DNA of 64,000 nt from positions 71,424,001 to 71,488,000 of the forward strand of contig CM097888.1 in NCBI GenBank assembly GCA_044892525.1, in the 5' to 3' direction. The stretch is from Schmidtea polychroa (Eukaryota). Below are positions 10,588 to 18,746 of this stretch, piece after piece. The position numbers were made by a program, and so were the translations under genes. Below the pieces are notes generated by a model. The model had not been told where the DNA came from. It was given only the letters and a program-made list of their open reading frames with translations, and did not search any database. Within the stretch, counting starts at the first letter, position 1, and every line of letters begins with the position of its first letter.

Positions 10588-12310
10588 CATGGCCCCATTA
10601 ACCATAGGGTTAATTGGGCTACAGCCCAGGGGCGCCATCGATCCGAGGGCGCTAAGAAAACAAGATAGTGAAATTTAATTACTTTTTTTTAATTTAAAAA
10701 AAAGTAATTTTCTTTATATTTAGCGTATCTGTGATTTACGTTAGTAATGTGTTCAATGTTATATTTTTTCTCATCCATATAAACCATGTATTTTTAAATT
10801 TTATTGAAAATGTTGGTCATAAAAGTGAAGAAATGGAAAAATGCGTAATAGGACTCTTAGAAAAATACGGAATTGATTTAGAAGATTAATGCTCAAATAT
10901 GTCAGGAATTTATAGCGGACTTCAGGCACGAATAAAGTTAAAAAATAATTTGGCTATTTATGTACCATGTGCACCCCATTCACTGAATTTAATAGGTGAG
11001 TGTGCTGCAGAAAGTTGTTTGGAAGCCACGAAGTTATTTTTTTTCGTTCAGAGTGTATATAATTTTTTCGCTGCTTCAACTGGGCGTTGGGAAATATTGA
11101 AACGTCGCTTATCTGTGAAATATAAGATGCCAAAATCACTGAGCAGCACTCGATGGTCTGCACGTGCCGAATCCGTTCATGCTTTAGTTCTCGGATATGA
11201 ATATTTTAAGCATGCTCTTAATGATATATTTACAGATTTAACACAGAAATGTTCCACTAGAATTGAAGCAGAAGGTTTGGAAAAGCAGTTCAATTCTCTC
11301 GAAACTGGTTTTATGCTTTCATTTTGGAATGATATTCTGGAAACCATGAATAAAATTAATGTTAGCCTCCAGAAAGTTGAAATCGAAATTGAAACAGTGG
11401 TTAAATTATACACTTCATTGGAAACATATATTGAAGAACGTCGAAATATAGATTCATTTAATTATTACAAAAAGAAAGGAGAAAATCTATCGGGTTGTTT
11501 TGAATTTAAAACTGCAGGAACTGTTAAAAGAAAAAAGCAGTTCGATAAAGGGACATCAGCCGACACACAATGTGATAAAAATAGTAATTTCTGTATAAAT
11601 ATTTTTTATGTAATTATTGATAAACTTTTGGCAGAAATAAAAAAACGGAAATCTGCATATGATCGCATTGCCACTAAATTTGGAATTTTAATGAATTTAA
11701 AACATTTCGACAAAAATATGATACGAGAAAAAGCAACTATTTTATATAAAGAATACCCAGATGATCTTGAAAATGGTCTAATCGAGGAATGTTTACATTT
11801 TAAACTTGTAAATTCAATATCGGATAACTTAGCAGCATTATCTAAATCTGAGCAAATTTTAAGAACAATAATTGAATCGCAAATTGAATGCACTTTTCCG
11901 AAAGTAACAACAGCTCTACGAATATATTTAAGTATCGTCTGTACAAATTGTAGCGGAGAAAGGTCGTTTTCAACTCTCAAGAGAATAAAAAATCATCTAA
12001 GATCATCTTTAGGACAATACAAATTAAATAATTTAAGTATTTTGTCAAAAGAAGCGGATATCCTTGAGAAACTGGATCACAAGAAAATTATAGATATATT
12101 TGCTATAAATAAATGCCGCAAAAGACATATTTAAATTAAAAATTAATATTTAATTCACATATTTATATAAATTTTTTGAATTTTGTTTTGCGTAAATACA
12201 TATTTAAGTTTTGAATTTTTGAAAATAAAATTGAATTTTTATAATAAAAGTATGTAGGGGTGCAAAATTTTATTTAGCCCAGGGCGCTCAAACTTATTAA
12301 TACGGCCATG
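10588..12310 (+). mobile_element. Internally deleted hAT element, Tip100/ZMYM1-like (1723 bp)
   Basis: CATGGCC / GGCCATG termini; perfect 8-bp TSD ATGGCTGA. Confidence 0.92.
10899..12134 (+). pseudogene. N-terminally truncated hAT transposase (411-aa open frame)
   Basis: YVPCAPHSLNL (CxxH), STRWSAR, and SGERSFSTLKRIKNHLRS (hAT dimerisation domain); zinc finger and first catalytic Asp region are absent. Confidence 0.88.
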
Positions 12311-13124
12311 ATGGCTGAATAGGGTGAGGTAAGGTGGGATTGTGATTTTTATATAGAAACGAAGAAAATAAAGATCTTTTAATATAATTTTATTTTGCTT
12401 TATTAGTTTAACATCACTACACGAACCGCCTGCAATGTTTTTTTATCTTCCAAATAGTTTCGGGTATCCCAGCTAGTAATACATAATTAAAGATTTTATA
12501 ATTTAAAATATATACATCCCCGCTCAGAAGAACAAAGTGATGTGCTCTGACTTAAATTAAGTAAAACTATTAAAAACGTTTCATTTATTTTATATTTTAA
12601 ATTTCAAAATTTCTTATTCGAGCGTAAAATTTATTCCTAAAACTCAGATGAAATTTCATTGAAAATTTTTCTTATAGAAATAAATTTGATACCGAAATAA
12701 TGTCTACTGAGAGCAAGCTAATTCACTGGCTAGCATTACATCCAAAATGAACAGAACTTTGTTCTAATTTCTAAAATATTAATTCAACAAATATTCGAAA
12801 TTCCATGACAACAATAACGGTATATTTTATTTAATAAAACAATTTCATATCAAGTGCAATTTGTTTGATATCAATTCAATAAATGTTCAACTGAAAATTT
12901 TCGATTTGTAGTTTGCTTGAAATCTAAATCAAATTAAAGAATTAATAATATATATTTTTGTTAAATAAGAATAGAATTTTATTATTTTTATTTCAAAAAT
13001 TGATTTGGATTGAAAAATTTCGAAAATTCCCATTTAAAGAATAAGGGAATATTCTAACTATAATTATAATTAGCTTGATTTATTAGTACAATAAATCAAA
13101 TAGTTAAATAAATTATTTCATTAA

Positions 13125-13345: not shown

Positions 13346-14271
13346 TTAATGTTTTTTTAATTCATTATTTATTTTCTACGATGTAAGAAATTATTTTGTT
13401 TTAAAGTATTAATGGCAGAAGGTTGAATATTAAATCATTTCAGTTTTTAACCTTTTCTTCAATTTAGTGCATGAAACAGTGAAGCTCACAAATGTGCATC
13501 TTTGAATCTTTGATTTTTCTTAATAAATTTCAAGTGATGCTAATGATTGTAATGTATCGAAAATATTTTTCATTCTCAAACTTATATCACAGTAAGGAAA
13601 TAAGGTGACAGAAAGTTAACATTTAATGAAGACACGTAACCATGGGATGCTTTGTGGGGGTTTGACCTCCCCTACTATAATAGTAATTTAGAAATACGTA
13701 ACTCACGACGATACAGTTCAGAAATTCAGTATTTTTAAAAATTCAATTATGAATTTATTGCCATTTTCGAACTTTTTACAATAAATCACGTGTAATCCAG
13801 TAGTGGTAAGACATTTCCTAGTATCCAAATGCTAAATTAGAGGTATAAAATACATAAAACAGGCGGACCTCGGAATAGCAATGCTGTTCATAATCCCATA
13901 TGATTATTATGAAACATTGAAAGGCTAACAATTATAATCATTTTTAGATTTATGTTCCTGAAAACATATTTACATTCTTCCTTTTAGTTAGGGACAGCGA
14001 ATGAAGGAGTTATCCACTTCATAAACCTATCATTTGGCGAATGAACGTATTCGTCATTGGATTATTTTTTATGTAGTCTTCACCCCAACAGGAGATTCTA
14101 GTATATATGATCTTTCAAATGACCAAAATTAGTTTTACTTCTTCTACTAGTTTCGTTATTTTCAGAAAAAGTTGTTAAAATATTGTAAAATTCCAAATAA
14201 ATATAATTATTGAACTTAACGAAAATTAAAAGCATTGAATCACTATTTCACATTCTCTCGTCAAATAAAAT

Positions 14272-17200
14272 CTACAAATTATTCTTACTTTTCATTCTCG
14301 TCGAAAAGGAATTCCTAAATTTCATATTGTATATCGCTAGAGAATTTACGCAATATTGTAAACTTCCAGGTAAATAACCAATTAATCCTTGTCTCACTTC
14401 TTGAATTGCCTTGACTATAATCTCTTTTCGACCCAAATCTGCGGTTAGTTTATTCATTGAAACTAATGTTATATTCGATGAAGTTAGATCTGAAGAACTC
14501 TAAAAAGGTTCCTTTAAGTTAACGAAAATAATTACTCAATATTTGAGAAGAAGTTAAAGTGTCAATGTTTATACTGACTCTACGAATATAGCCATTGAGT
14601 AAAGCATTCTGAAGGTCCTGAAATTCGAACAATTTTGGTGAGGAAATGTTAACAATGCATGATCCTAAAGATTGAATTTTCATAAAAACTTTATGTTCAA
14701 CCAAATTTACCAGATTTCATCCGTCTCAAGAATTTTGAATTAATTGACTTAAAATTGTTACAGGACGATTCCAAATGAACAGAAATACAGTCCGATGATT
14801 TCAGAAAATATTCCAAATTGTTAACTCTTGTAATATTTGGATCCTTGCCGTCAAATATCAAATTATTTGAGTCAAAACTGTTAACAGACAGACCATACAG
14901 TTTAGCTTTCCGAGCAACCGAAATTGCAACTGGGTCTTAATGAAAGAAAATTTATATTAACTATGATTAAATTGAATTTCTTCTTTTTTGTAAGCATCTT
15001 TCATTATTTACATTTCTTACACAACTGGTAACTGTAGAGTTGTAAAATTGGAATTATTTTAAAGTTAAATTGAATGGAAACCAAATGAAATAGCAGAAAT
15101 GTAAAGAAAAACTTTAATAGAAACATAATTAAAAAAAAATTTATACTTAAATATGAAAGGCACAATAATGCAAGTTTGTAGAAAATCAATGAATGATTAA
15201 TTCTTTGGATTTTAAGCAAAAAACGATCAGAGAAAGGAGAAATTGTGGCAAACAACAAGATCGAAATTATTTTGTCGGAAAATGCACGAAAAAGTATGAA
15301 AAGTACAAATTTGTTTAAAACACAATATAAATTAATTAATTAATTAATTTTAAAATTAAACTGGTCATTCACAACCAAAAAGGATTTTTTTTCAATTTGT
15401 TCATATTATGATTGAAAGTAAAATATTTAGTGTTTAATTTTTTTAAAGCTTGTCAATTAAATTAATTAATTCATTTAAAATCAAAAATTACATTTAAATC
15501 CATTTTAATTTAAAATTACAATTGTTGTAAAATTAATTTTAATATCAAAATTATAAAAAATAAAGTAAAATCAATTAGAATAAGAAGAGGTAATAAAATA
15601 AATATTAAAGAAAAATAAGATTAGTGTTAATCAATTGTTGTAACCATTGGAAAAATAATAAAAATAAAATAGGAAAAACGAATGACATGCTAAAATAATA
15701 AAGTACAAAATATCAAGGTATACTAAACAAATTTTCACATAAGAAATAAAGGGAGAATGATTCTTTCGGTAACTACACTGTTTGGTATAAGTCCAAGGAT
15801 CTGGAACGAATTTAGGATGTATTCCAAAGTACCATTGTATAATTATTTATAAAATAAGTGTTTGTCAATAAATATTTGCATTACAAAAATAGAAAACAAT
15901 AGAAAACAATAATGAAATCAAGTAAAGAGAATCGCATGGAGCTATTGTGCAAAATGCTATGTTGAAAACGATCAGAGATAATAAATATTTTCAATTCCTG
16001 GCGTTGTTTTAATGAACACCTGACTTGACAGTTTTTTGTTGATATGGAAAGTTGAAAAATTTTTAAAGTACAGTAATAATAAAATTTAATAAATTTTTGG
16101 GAATTAGTGGTTGACATAAAAGACAACCAGACACCCAAGGTATTAAATTAAGTTTAATCTGATTTTTATTAAAACTCGATTTATTTATTACTTTTTACAT
16201 TAAATATGATTTCAAAAATTATTAAAGAGCTTTTAATTGGTTTCAATATTTAATCTTCTATTTATCTTAACATTTTATCTGTTATTTCTCTGTCACTTAT
16301 ATTCATTCTTGCAGACTACAGTTTAATGTGCTTTCTTTTCTAACACAAATTTTATTTTAAAAGAATAAATAAATAAATATATAAATAAATAATTAATATT
16401 TATAATTGCATAAATAAATAATTTTTTTATTTAAAAGTGTATAAAATATATATGATAAATTCCATTAAGAATAATGATGTGTTTGCTTTTTAAAAATTTA
16501 TTAAATTCGTTTTTTTAAATTAAATTAAAACAATTATTTATTTTCTATTATGAACACAATAAATACTCGAATTATCATATAAAAGCTTATAAAAGTTTTC
16601 TCGAAATTCTCAATTATAAGTTTTATAATATTAAATTTTAATTTTCCAATGTTTATTTCTTCTACTCATATTTAATTTAGAGAATTTTGCTGAGTTTCAA
16701 GAATCTATGTGGGAATTTGTAATGATTTACTAATCGAAAAGAAGTGATGTTGGTGTCGTTAAGAAAGTGCAAACATTCGTGCCAAAATGAGTGGAAAGTG
16801 TTAAACTGGCAATTTATTATTCATAAATTTTAAAATATAAAATAATGATAGAATTTTAAATATTTCATATTTTATAACATATATTTTTCATCATTAATTT
16901 ATTATATATATTTCCATAAAAATTTAAAATACCGAGTCCGAATAATCCTATAGTTTTGCTTGCCAAAACGGTAGCAATGTGCGGAATATCAACGAAATCA
17001 GAAATAGTTTTGGAATCGGAGAATGGAATATTAGTAAGAAGACAGAATATGAGAACGAGAGTTATATTTGACATTTCATCAATCGACGAGGGGGGTATCA
17101 CTGACACGGATATACCTAAAATTGAATCATTTTCTTAACAATTAAAACCAAATTTTTACCGAATTCTGAAAACGTGTTAATAGTATCAATAGTTTGGAAA

Positions 17201-18121
17201 TTGTTTCCTAATTTGACAATATGTTTTAATGATGAAAAGCACCACAGTTTTGAAAAAAGTTTAGTAAAATTATTTTCAACAATTATTGCCGAAGGATTCC
17301 AGTTTTCCTAAAAGAATAAAAATTAATATTTATTTAAATATTTTTTTATTTAACTATCTCAAAACTATTTCGTAATCCTTCTTCTTTAACTACATGGATA
17401 TTTGAAAATTCTTCCAATCCATGGAAATTTTGAGTTTCTAATGTTGACAAGATTATTAGGACAGTTGGTCTTTTGTATAAAGATTGAATGTTAGCCATCA
17501 TCATAGAAGTAAACATCATTCCAGAAACTAAAACAAATAAATTTAAACTTCATAATTAAAACAAATAATTTCAATTACTCTGCATGATTTTCATACAGTT
17601 AGTCCAATAAATTTGTGAAATATAAATGTTTTCGTTTTCTAATGATGTATTGCCGATTAGCTTTTGCTTTACCGGGGGTAAATATTCAGATTTATTTTTA
17701 AAAGAATTATTAAAAGAAGTATTTTTAATTTTATTCATTGTTTTAGATGAGTTAATTTGGGATGTATATTTTAAGGATGTTTTTTTCAATATACCAAATT
17801 TTTTCGCCTGCCTAGAAGGAAGGTCAATACGAAGAGGGGGATTCGACTCGGGATCTGCTACAGGAACATCTCCGTCTTGTTTTTCGCCACCCAAAAAATG
17901 TCGACTACAAATACGTAACTAAAGAAAATTCGAATTCTATTTGCATAAGCTAATATAATTACTTGACCAACAATGTTATTTTCCGTCCTACCAATAGCTT
18001 CCAACCATTTACTTCTTAGAATATCGGGCTTTTTAGGAACTCGGTAAAAATGTCGATTATCAACTATTTCTTTATATCGTGCTCGGAATTTACAGTTGGG
18101 AAATCCACAAGTTGTAGGCAT
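14272..18121 (-). CDS. ctbp: THAP-domain/CtBP-like fusion protein, 524 aa; exons 18121-17963, 17918-17579, 17527-17355, 17307-17160, 17115-16933, 14935-14711, 14664-14536, 14489-14272
   Basis: Eight GT-AG exons total 1575 nt in frame; six introns are 44-51 nt and one is about 2 kb. The THAP C2CH domain is completed by splicing (MPTTCGFPNC...W...LRICSRHF). The C-terminal part is colinear with CtBP: RPTV, LKHIVKLG, SDCISVH, QEVRQGLIGYLPGSLQYCVN. Confidence 0.88.
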
Positions 18122-18746
18122 TGTTTTAATAATGTGTGAAAAAATGATAACAAAAACTTGTTGCAGACAAATTCAGATTCCACAATAACTGCAAATGGTT
18201 ATTTATATCAATTATGCGCAACACTTGACCACGATTGGATCCTTCATTTTAAGCTGAACAGAGTCAGCTCTTCAGTGATCACACCCATTTTTTGTGTACT
18301 GTCCACATGTCGCTTCTCAGTGGATGATGTTTCCGATAACTTTGAAGCCGGGCGTTGGACAATCGCATTTAATTATAGCATTATCCCTCTCTTCCCCTTC
18401 GTTTATCAAATGAACACTTTTATGTTGATGCAATTTACAATGACTCTAATAAGATGGGTTGGAATTTTACGTGGCGGAATCAGTGTAATGCATTTATCTT
18501 TTTTCTAAAAATTTCTACATAAACAATGAAATAGCAGTTTTTACTATTATTATTTATTACTATTATTAAAATTTATAATTTATAATAATTATTTTAAAAA
18601 ATAAAAGTTTTAAATTATAGTACTAATACTTTGATTGTAAGTAATATATCTTAATATAAAAATTAATTTAATTAATATTAATAATGAAAGAATGAAAGCA
18701 AATTTTTTATAATAGACAATCGCAAATTAAGTATATTAAAATATAA

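Follow-up and report, generated by a model that had tools for sequence, protein, structure and literature searches.

CtBP is the textbook case of a metabolic enzyme fold that was turned into an NADH-sensing transcriptional corepressor. Here we describe a gene of the planarian Schmidtea polychroa whose product combines an N-terminal THAP zinc finger with a strongly degenerate CtBP-like domain. It lies on the minus strand of a 64,000-nt stretch of DNA, referred to hereafter as the window (assembly GCA_044892525.1, contig CM097888.1, positions 71,424,001 to 71,488,000), in a genome of 781 Mb with four large chromosomes and a GC content of ~27% (~26% in the region of the gene); the window falls on the contig designated C4. 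An initial annotation, made from the letters alone, had described the gene as an eight-exon frame and had read its product as a DNA-tethered, catalytically dead and probably NADH-insensitive corepressor, which, if found in a flatworm, would have extended the THAP-CtBP fusion beyond the nematodes.

The frame rebuilt from the sequence exists as it was first described: it comprises 1575 nt and 524 amino acids (aa) in eight exons of the minus strand (18121-17963, 17918-17579, 17527-17355, 17307-17160, 17115-16933, 14935-14711, 14664-14536 and 14489-14272), and its introns are all of the GT-AG type, six being 44-51 nt long and one 1997 nt. The list of open reading frames (ORFs) contains the gene as fragments only, the longest single ORF at the locus being no more than 107 aa, and the frame is invisible there, just as had been remarked. 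The 3' end of the eight-exon model, however, proved to be wrong by one exon. Contigs of the sequencing runs X1 and X6 both depart from the genome at 14289 (minus-strand sequence AAAA/GTAAGA), and the 30 loose letters past this point are an exact match to 12923-12894, behind a TTTAG acceptor. Because the contigs leave at a GTAAGA donor and resume at 12923, there is a ninth exon, and the 17 nt at 14288-14272 are intronic. The corrected product has 536 aa and ends in ...STRMKNFKQTTNRKFSVEHLLN, replacing ...STRMKSKNNL, with the coding end at 12871 and an ATTAAA/AATAAA-like poly(A) signal near 12835-12826, downstream of the stop in exon 9. The locus is a real, expressed protein-coding gene of at least nine exons.

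The transcript evidence comes from run contigs mapped to positions 13800-18600. Run X1 (labelled 'RNA?'), which is RNA-like, contains 18% of the sampled words, whereas the DNA-like runs contain all of them. Spliced RNA-like contigs back five junctions, namely those between exons 1 and 2, 2 and 3, 4 and 5, 6 and 7, and 8 and 9. The most informative of these, an X1 contig of 607 nt, joins 18162-17963 to 17918-17579 with the intron 17962..17919 removed, and its last 67 nt are placed on 17527-17461 by depth arithmetic over the bins 17503-17663 and 17342-17502; since the depth accounts exactly for these remaining letters, a single RNA contig runs from the 5' untranslated region (UTR) through exons 1 and 2 into exon 3. 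The junctions between exons 4 and 5 and between exons 6 and 7 were read directly, from one X1 contig each. The junctions between exons 3 and 4, 5 and 6 (which creates the aspartate discussed below) and 7 and 8 were not seen among the listed contigs, and for these the model is based on GT-AG boundaries, the reading frame, the protein of an ortholog (P0001) and conserved intron positions. For the junction of exons 5 and 6 in particular, P0001 reads GLFGLDQVAIS across it, and both paralogs of the gene in the same genome are interrupted at this codon by an intron of the same phase. The splicing pattern proposed at the outset is thereby confirmed by RNA for part of its junctions. Six differences are present in run X1, three synonymous and three non-synonymous, a number too small to interpret (n = 6). 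Two loose contig ends near the start of the gene were also considered: one at 18127 was rejected as a trans-spliced leader, there being no AG before the junction, and one at 18087 was rejected as an alternative exon, as it represents the mRNA of paralog B (see below).

The layout of the product can be followed along the exons, all on the minus strand. Exon 1 (17963..18162) comprises the 5' UTR, which extends at least to 18162, the ATG at 18121 and codons 1-53, which encode the first half of the THAP zinc finger, with C5 and C10, and exon 2 (17579..17918) encodes its second half (C57, H60 and GDVPVADP) followed by a ~75-aa linker rich in N, S and K. The CtBP-like domain begins in exon 3 (17355..17527), where KRPTVLI corresponds to RPLVALL and where there is an 11-residue deletion relative to CtBP. 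The rest of the substrate-domain homolog is encoded by exon 4 (17160..17307), whose LKHIVKLGNNFQTID corresponds to LRIIVRIGSGFDNID of CtBP, and exon 5 (16933..17115) contributes a helix and a strand that lead into the Rossmann loop, ending in ...KTIGLFGL and the G of a split codon. Intron 5 (14936..16932; 1997 nt, phase 1) thus falls within the codon for the second glycine of the GxGxxG motif. Exon 6 (14711..14935), with DPVAISVARKAKLYGLSVNSFD..., supplies the Rossmann beta-alpha-beta unit; exon 7 (14536..14664) contains the stretches NISSP and NIDTLT; exon 8 (14289..14489), with its true donor after 14289, contains LVSM and the last helix, ...LQYCVNS; and the coding part of exon 9 (12871..12923) encodes NFKQTTNRKFSVEHLLN and a TGA stop at 12873-12871, with the 3' UTR beyond. 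Intron 5 contains repeated DNA (15039-15090 and 16537-16858), to which the DNA-like run X2 gives a very high depth. Since 16638-16715 is matched, with seven mismatches, by an X1 contig of 1652 nt, a related copy of the repeat must be transcribed elsewhere.

The conservation of the THAP domain, claimed from the start, is borne out by comparison with the THAP chain of Caenorhabditis elegans CTBP-1 (PDB: 2JM3). Residues 1-53, from exon 1, match residues 3-55 of this chain with an E-value of 1e-24, and exon 2 matches residues 56-90 (E 9e-8), resuming at the very next residue. The spliced domain of 88 residues is ~75% identical to 2JM3, and the C2CH ligands C5, C10, C57 and H60 are present and aligned to it with their usual spacing (C-x4-C ... 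C-x2-H). With the domain split by an intron, exon 1 alone scores 23.4 bits against the Pfam model PF05485 (cut-off 23.9), and the ortholog P0001, which is 97-98% identical in the THAP domain, scores 33.6 bits. A search with exon 1 recovered ~60 hits in 1.8 billion representative proteins, nearly all of which start with MPTTCGFPNC; the domain is hence a distinct, CtBP-type version of THAP. The CtBP-type finger of the C. elegans relative is a sequence-specific DNA-binding domain, and the finger encoded here would presumably bind DNA as well.

One might object that two neighboring genes, one with the THAP exons and one with the CtBP-like exons, have been wrongly joined, given that the whole gene is covered by no single contig. 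Yet the 607-nt contig spans the 5' UTR, the THAP domain and the start of the CtBP-like domain in exon 3, all exon phases fit, and more than 20 species have single proteins with this order of domains. We therefore consider such a misjoining very improbable, and the fusion itself, as first described, stands.

The CtBP-like part of the protein presents a very different picture from the THAP domain. All four motif replacements that had been reported, GLGRVG by GLDPVA, NTARG by NISSP, DVHESE by NIDTLT and TPH by VSM, are correct in an alignment of 35 sequences, in which sites were tabulated in the numbering of human CtBP1. In exon 6, G181 is kept, G183 is replaced by D (D335 of the window protein) and G186 by A, so the dinucleotide-binding loop GxGxxG is absent and reads G-L-D-P-V-A; D204 is kept, with the 17-residue spacing. 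In exon 7, R266 is replaced by S (S418), D290 by N and E295 by T (T447), and in exon 8, H315 by M (M464) and W318 by L. The catalytic triad R266/E295/H315 is hence absent from the window protein, which on this residue-level evidence is catalytically dead, in agreement with the initial annotation. Splicing does not appear to restore these features: no CtBP-like exon hidden inside intron 5 was found by tblastn with six CtBP queries, by which an alternative exon restoring GRVG was rejected, and use of the alternative CAG acceptor that lies 6 nt further on would result in GLFGLVAIS, still without GxGxxG. The absence of a C-terminal tail was likewise noted correctly, for only 34 residues follow CVNS; they are not CtBP-like, and the long disordered C-terminal domain is missing. 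The tails of canonical flatworm CtBPs measure 150-550 residues (PMC9907507).

Despite these losses, the provenance of the domain is recognizable. Exon 6 matches the Pfam model PF02826 (2-Hacid_dh_C) at 26.2 bits, reaching the cut-off; its best sequence matches in the PDB are human CtBP2 and CtBP1, and it is ~33% identical to canonical CtBP. The ortholog P0001, a protein of 444 aa that is devoid of exon 4 and carries a retained intron, scores 48 bits against PF02826, as opposed to 183 bits for a canonical-type protein. Its AlphaFold model has a mean pLDDT of 65, with 76-94 in the Rossmann half, and retrieves the CtBP1/2 crystal structures first in Foldseek (E 1e-13). Profile and sequence matches and the model thus indicate that the core descends from the CtBP branch of the D-2-hydroxyacid dehydrogenases and that its fold has been kept.

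The substitution at G183 is of special relevance to NADH sensing. We take the numberings of CtBP1-L and BARS to be offset by 11, which would make G172 of the latter equivalent to G183 and fits the L182/V185 in the title of PDB entry 7kwm. The title of the CtBP1/BARS G172E structure (PDB: 3ga0) speaks of 'impairing NAD(H) binding and dimerization', and this mutant has been described as NADH-insensitive and defective in NADH binding (PMC6731274). Because the window protein has an aspartate at the position changed in the mutant, its insensitivity to NADH is likely, and this part of the first interpretation is retained. A different reading is that NAD(H), or some other nucleotide, is still bound and that redox sensing was kept without catalysis. 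The window protein and most members of the flatworm clade keep G181, D204 and their 17-residue spacing, and paralog A has a full GLGQTG, all of which would suit such a sensor; but the proximity of the pyrophosphate demands no side chain at the second glycine, where an aspartate now stands, the third glycine is an alanine, and the analogous G172E mutant is reported to bind NADH defectively. We regard a surviving nucleotide sensor as improbable.

The term corepressor is not supported, since by a less certain alignment residues of both the PXDLS-binding cleft and the dimer interface have been replaced too. At the NADH-promoted dimer/tetramer interface, the arginines R141, R142, R163 and R171 correspond to T, N, a gap and V, respectively, and W318 to L, and the cleft residues A52 and V66 tentatively to N and G, the alignment being least certain here (the N-terminal subdomain aligns weakly, with ~20% identity and the 11-residue deletion). 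It could still be imagined that the degenerate domain heterodimerises with the canonical CtBP of chromosome 2 and so recruits the corepressor complex to sites bound by THAP. This would parallel the job of the THAP isoform within one gene in other phyla, where the THAP and THAP-less isoforms have a common dimerising core; moreover, the fold is retained in the ortholog model and a canonical partner is encoded in the genome. Against this adaptor role stand the replaced interface arginines and the impaired dimerization to which the title of 3ga0 refers for a G172E-type change, and on balance we think it unlikely. A complex prediction for a homodimer of the Rossmann half of P0001 (residues 222-444, two copies) gave a score of 0.06, which bears neither for nor against dimerisation.

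A canonical CtBP paralog, which the initial annotation had suggested looking for, is indeed present in the genome. A whole-genome Pfam search located it at C2:30.30 Mb, with GFGRVG, NTARG and TPH intact, and a genome search found no THAP exon on C2, the chromosome on which it lies. In place of the DVHESEP of other animals, this canonical copy has DVVENEP (H292 to V), with E295, R266 and H315 intact. The same Pfam search placed the PHGDH, GRHPR-like and AHCY genes at separate loci; two tandem intronless PHGDH-like copies lie ~11 kb apart at C2:18689868 and 18678204, one open over 525 aa and the other with an in-frame TAA. Just two further copies of the THAP exon were detected, both on C3 and each followed, ~4 kb downstream, by a weak dehydrogenase match. 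Paralog A (C3:90263667-90269977) has at least seven exons and ~551 aa as modelled, with an uncertain C-terminus; it retains E295 and a complete GLGQTG loop, though neither R266 nor H315, and has decayed less than the other two planarian copies. Paralog B (C3:91938766-91944847) is intact, with eight exons and 544 aa; its loop reads GGGPLS, and R266 and H315 are again lost. Both have open frames and intron phases identical to those of the window gene. Paralog B is expressed, the loose end of the X1 contig at window position 18087 being its exon 1 (30 of 30 letters).

Beyond this genome, the THAP-CtBP order is found across a wide range of animals. Proteins with a THAP domain and a degenerate core were recovered from Echinococcus, Taenia, Hymenolepis, Mesocestoides, Schistosoma, Heterobilharzia, Clonorchis, Calicophoron and Echinostoma, and the THAP protein of Macrostomum has a CtBP part that is still canonical-like. 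Maximum-likelihood analysis unites the flatworm THAP proteins in a single clade (support 100/99) and places the window protein inside the CtBPs; within the clade, the planarian paralogs are separated from the trematodes and cestodes, in agreement with flatworm phylogeny. These sequence relationships, with cestode and trematode proteins as the nearest named relatives, assign the window gene to a flatworm-wide family of THAP-CtBP-like proteins, and the architecture of the genome resembles that of planarians. Members of this family are already in public databases under automatic names, some of the cestode ones as 'C-terminal-binding protein 1'. Our literature search found no paper on flatworm or planarian THAP-CtBPs or on their degeneracy, and a study of CtBP evolution treats only the canonical flatworm CtBPs and their tails (PMC9907507).

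The suggestion that a flatworm copy would prove the fusion to exceed the nematodes has to be dropped, as THAP isoforms of hemichordate, echinoderm, amphioxus, annelid and fish CtBPs are already annotated; occurrence outside nematodes is established and not new here. Nematodes, the hemichordate Glandiceps, echinoderms, amphioxus and the annelid Lamellibrachia all have THAP-CtBPs whose cores are fully intact, and Glandiceps makes its THAP-bearing and THAP-less forms as isoforms from a single gene. Nicholas et al. (J Mol Biol, 2008) reportedly listed nematode, echinoderm and cephalochordate THAP-CtBPs in their abstract. Two further observations from this survey are a CtBP1 isoform X1 of the fish Lampris incognitus that is annotated with a THAP domain, and a THAP-CtBP of Caenorhabditis remanei that has H at R266 and V at E295, a sign of partial catalytic decay in nematodes too.

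The above observations are probably best accounted for by a duplication in flatworms followed by a division of labor, which left the window protein as a THAP-tethered pseudo-dehydrogenase, that is, a DNA-tethered regulator blind to NAD(H). In most bilaterians, a single CtBP gene would yield both THAP-bearing and THAP-less isoforms. We envisage that this gene was duplicated in those flatworms from which planarians and the parasitic classes descend, that one copy stayed a canonical CtBP and lost the THAP exon, and that the other kept the THAP exon while its enzymatic, NADH-binding and partner-binding features decayed with the fold retained. In planarians, the THAP copy would then have expanded to three genes. 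The product consists of a CtBP-type THAP domain (residues 1-90), a low-complexity linker and a pseudoenzyme dehydrogenase fold (~185-500); it would probably act as a transcriptional regulator that is tethered to DNA and no longer senses NAD(H), with the CtBP-shaped domain serving as a structural or protein-binding module.

Several observations weigh against this account. Between the window protein and P0001, the CtBP-like domain is 83-90% identical, the linker, which is presumably disordered, 83% and the THAP domain 97-98%, figures that suggest weak or diffuse constraint on the CtBP-like domain. The branches of the flatworm clade are very long, that of the window gene being the longest (3.43), and an attraction artefact is possible in the tree. 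G181, D204 and the G-x17-D spacing are retained, which makes residual nucleotide binding possible; the alignment of the subdomain containing A52 and V66 is uncertain at ~20% identity; and no single transcript spanning all exons was seen among the run contigs. Some of these points could be turned into the proposal that the gene is a decaying duplicate, either a transcribed pseudogene or one in which the THAP domain alone is selected and the CtBP-like tail drifts. The longest branch, the weak Pfam signal and CtBP-like exons that are conserved no better than the linker between two related species would all be expected of such a gene. The frame is nevertheless open across nine exons with correct splice sites, the ortholog and the two paralogs are open as well, and the Rossmann part of P0001 is predicted at a pLDDT of 76-94. 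Furthermore, cestodes and trematodes have kept the domain ever since they diverged from planarians, and this persistence across the phylum disfavors neutral drift. Decay of this kind appears to us quite improbable, and the duplication with division of labor remains our preferred account.

A more far-reaching formulation, to which we would give a little less than even credence, is that flatworms split a two-isoform CtBP gene and kept the THAP copy for several hundred million years as a pseudoenzyme without catalysis, NADH sensing, the PXDLS cleft or the known dimer interface, and that this copy, now represented by three planarian genes, took on a new DNA-bound function. If this were true, the CtBP fold would have gained such a function in flatworms, and the family would illustrate neatly how an isoform made from an alternative promoter can turn, once duplicated, into a gene in its own right. 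A lineage that is stripped of all known activities of the CtBP fold and yet fused to an almost unaltered DNA-binding THAP domain also raises the question of what the scaffold does beyond NADH sensing and PXDLS recruitment. Planarians are amenable to tests by RNAi and single-cell expression, and the parasite orthologs (Echinococcus, Taenia, Schistosoma) lend the family some applied interest.

The DNA on either side of the gene contains features of another kind. Just downstream of it, on the opposite strand, a 411-aa ORF (10899-12134, plus strand) has a C-terminus that by eye resembles a hAT-transposase dimerisation region (...SGERSFSTLKRIKNHLRS...). Just upstream, 18538-18569 is a highly repeated element of ~31 nt, with a depth of ~56,000 in run X2.

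Among characterized systems, the closest in architecture is C. elegans CTBP-1a (Nicholas et al. 2008, cited in PMC9907507), which has the same order of domains: a THAP domain that agrees in ~75% of 88 residues, MPTTCGFPNCKFR and the C2CH ligands among them, and, after a linker, a likewise CtBP-derived core. The nematode THAP-CtBPs keep GxGxxG, H315, A52, V66 and a long C-terminal tail, of which the window protein has none (tentatively so for A52 and V66). Furthermore, nematodes produce both CtBP forms from one gene, whereas in the planarian the THAP form has a degenerate gene to itself, in addition to the one for canonical CtBP. Loss of catalytic residues by itself does not set the window gene apart, one Caenorhabditis protein also being without R266 and E295. 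The cestode and trematode proteins, such as Echinococcus granulosus CDS15753.1 ('Zinc finger C2CH type'), Taenia solium 'C-terminal-binding protein 1' and unnamed proteins of Schistosoma and Clonorchis, are much nearer relatives: they belong to the same clade, are 73-83% identical in the THAP domain and have lost the triad. The cestode forms even share the G-L-D-P of the dinucleotide loop, with D204 kept. These parasite proteins differ in their length (~610-1060 aa) and in their linkers, and those of cestodes, unlike the window protein, keep the third glycine and A52/V66-like residues.

Canonical CtBPs, that is human CtBP1/2 and the copy on C2 of the same genome, have their fold and descent in common with the window protein. 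In comparison to them, the latter is without the NAD(H) loop, the triad, W318, the proline/alanine-rich tail and, by a less certain alignment, the dimer arginines and the PXDLS cleft, and adds an N-terminal THAP domain. Finally, CtBP1/BARS G172E (PDB: 3ga0) provides a laboratory counterpart to D335, in that an acidic residue takes the place of the second GxGxxG glycine. The mutant is a construct in an otherwise intact CtBP, whereas the aspartate of the window protein is natural, is shared with cestodes and is accompanied by many other losses.

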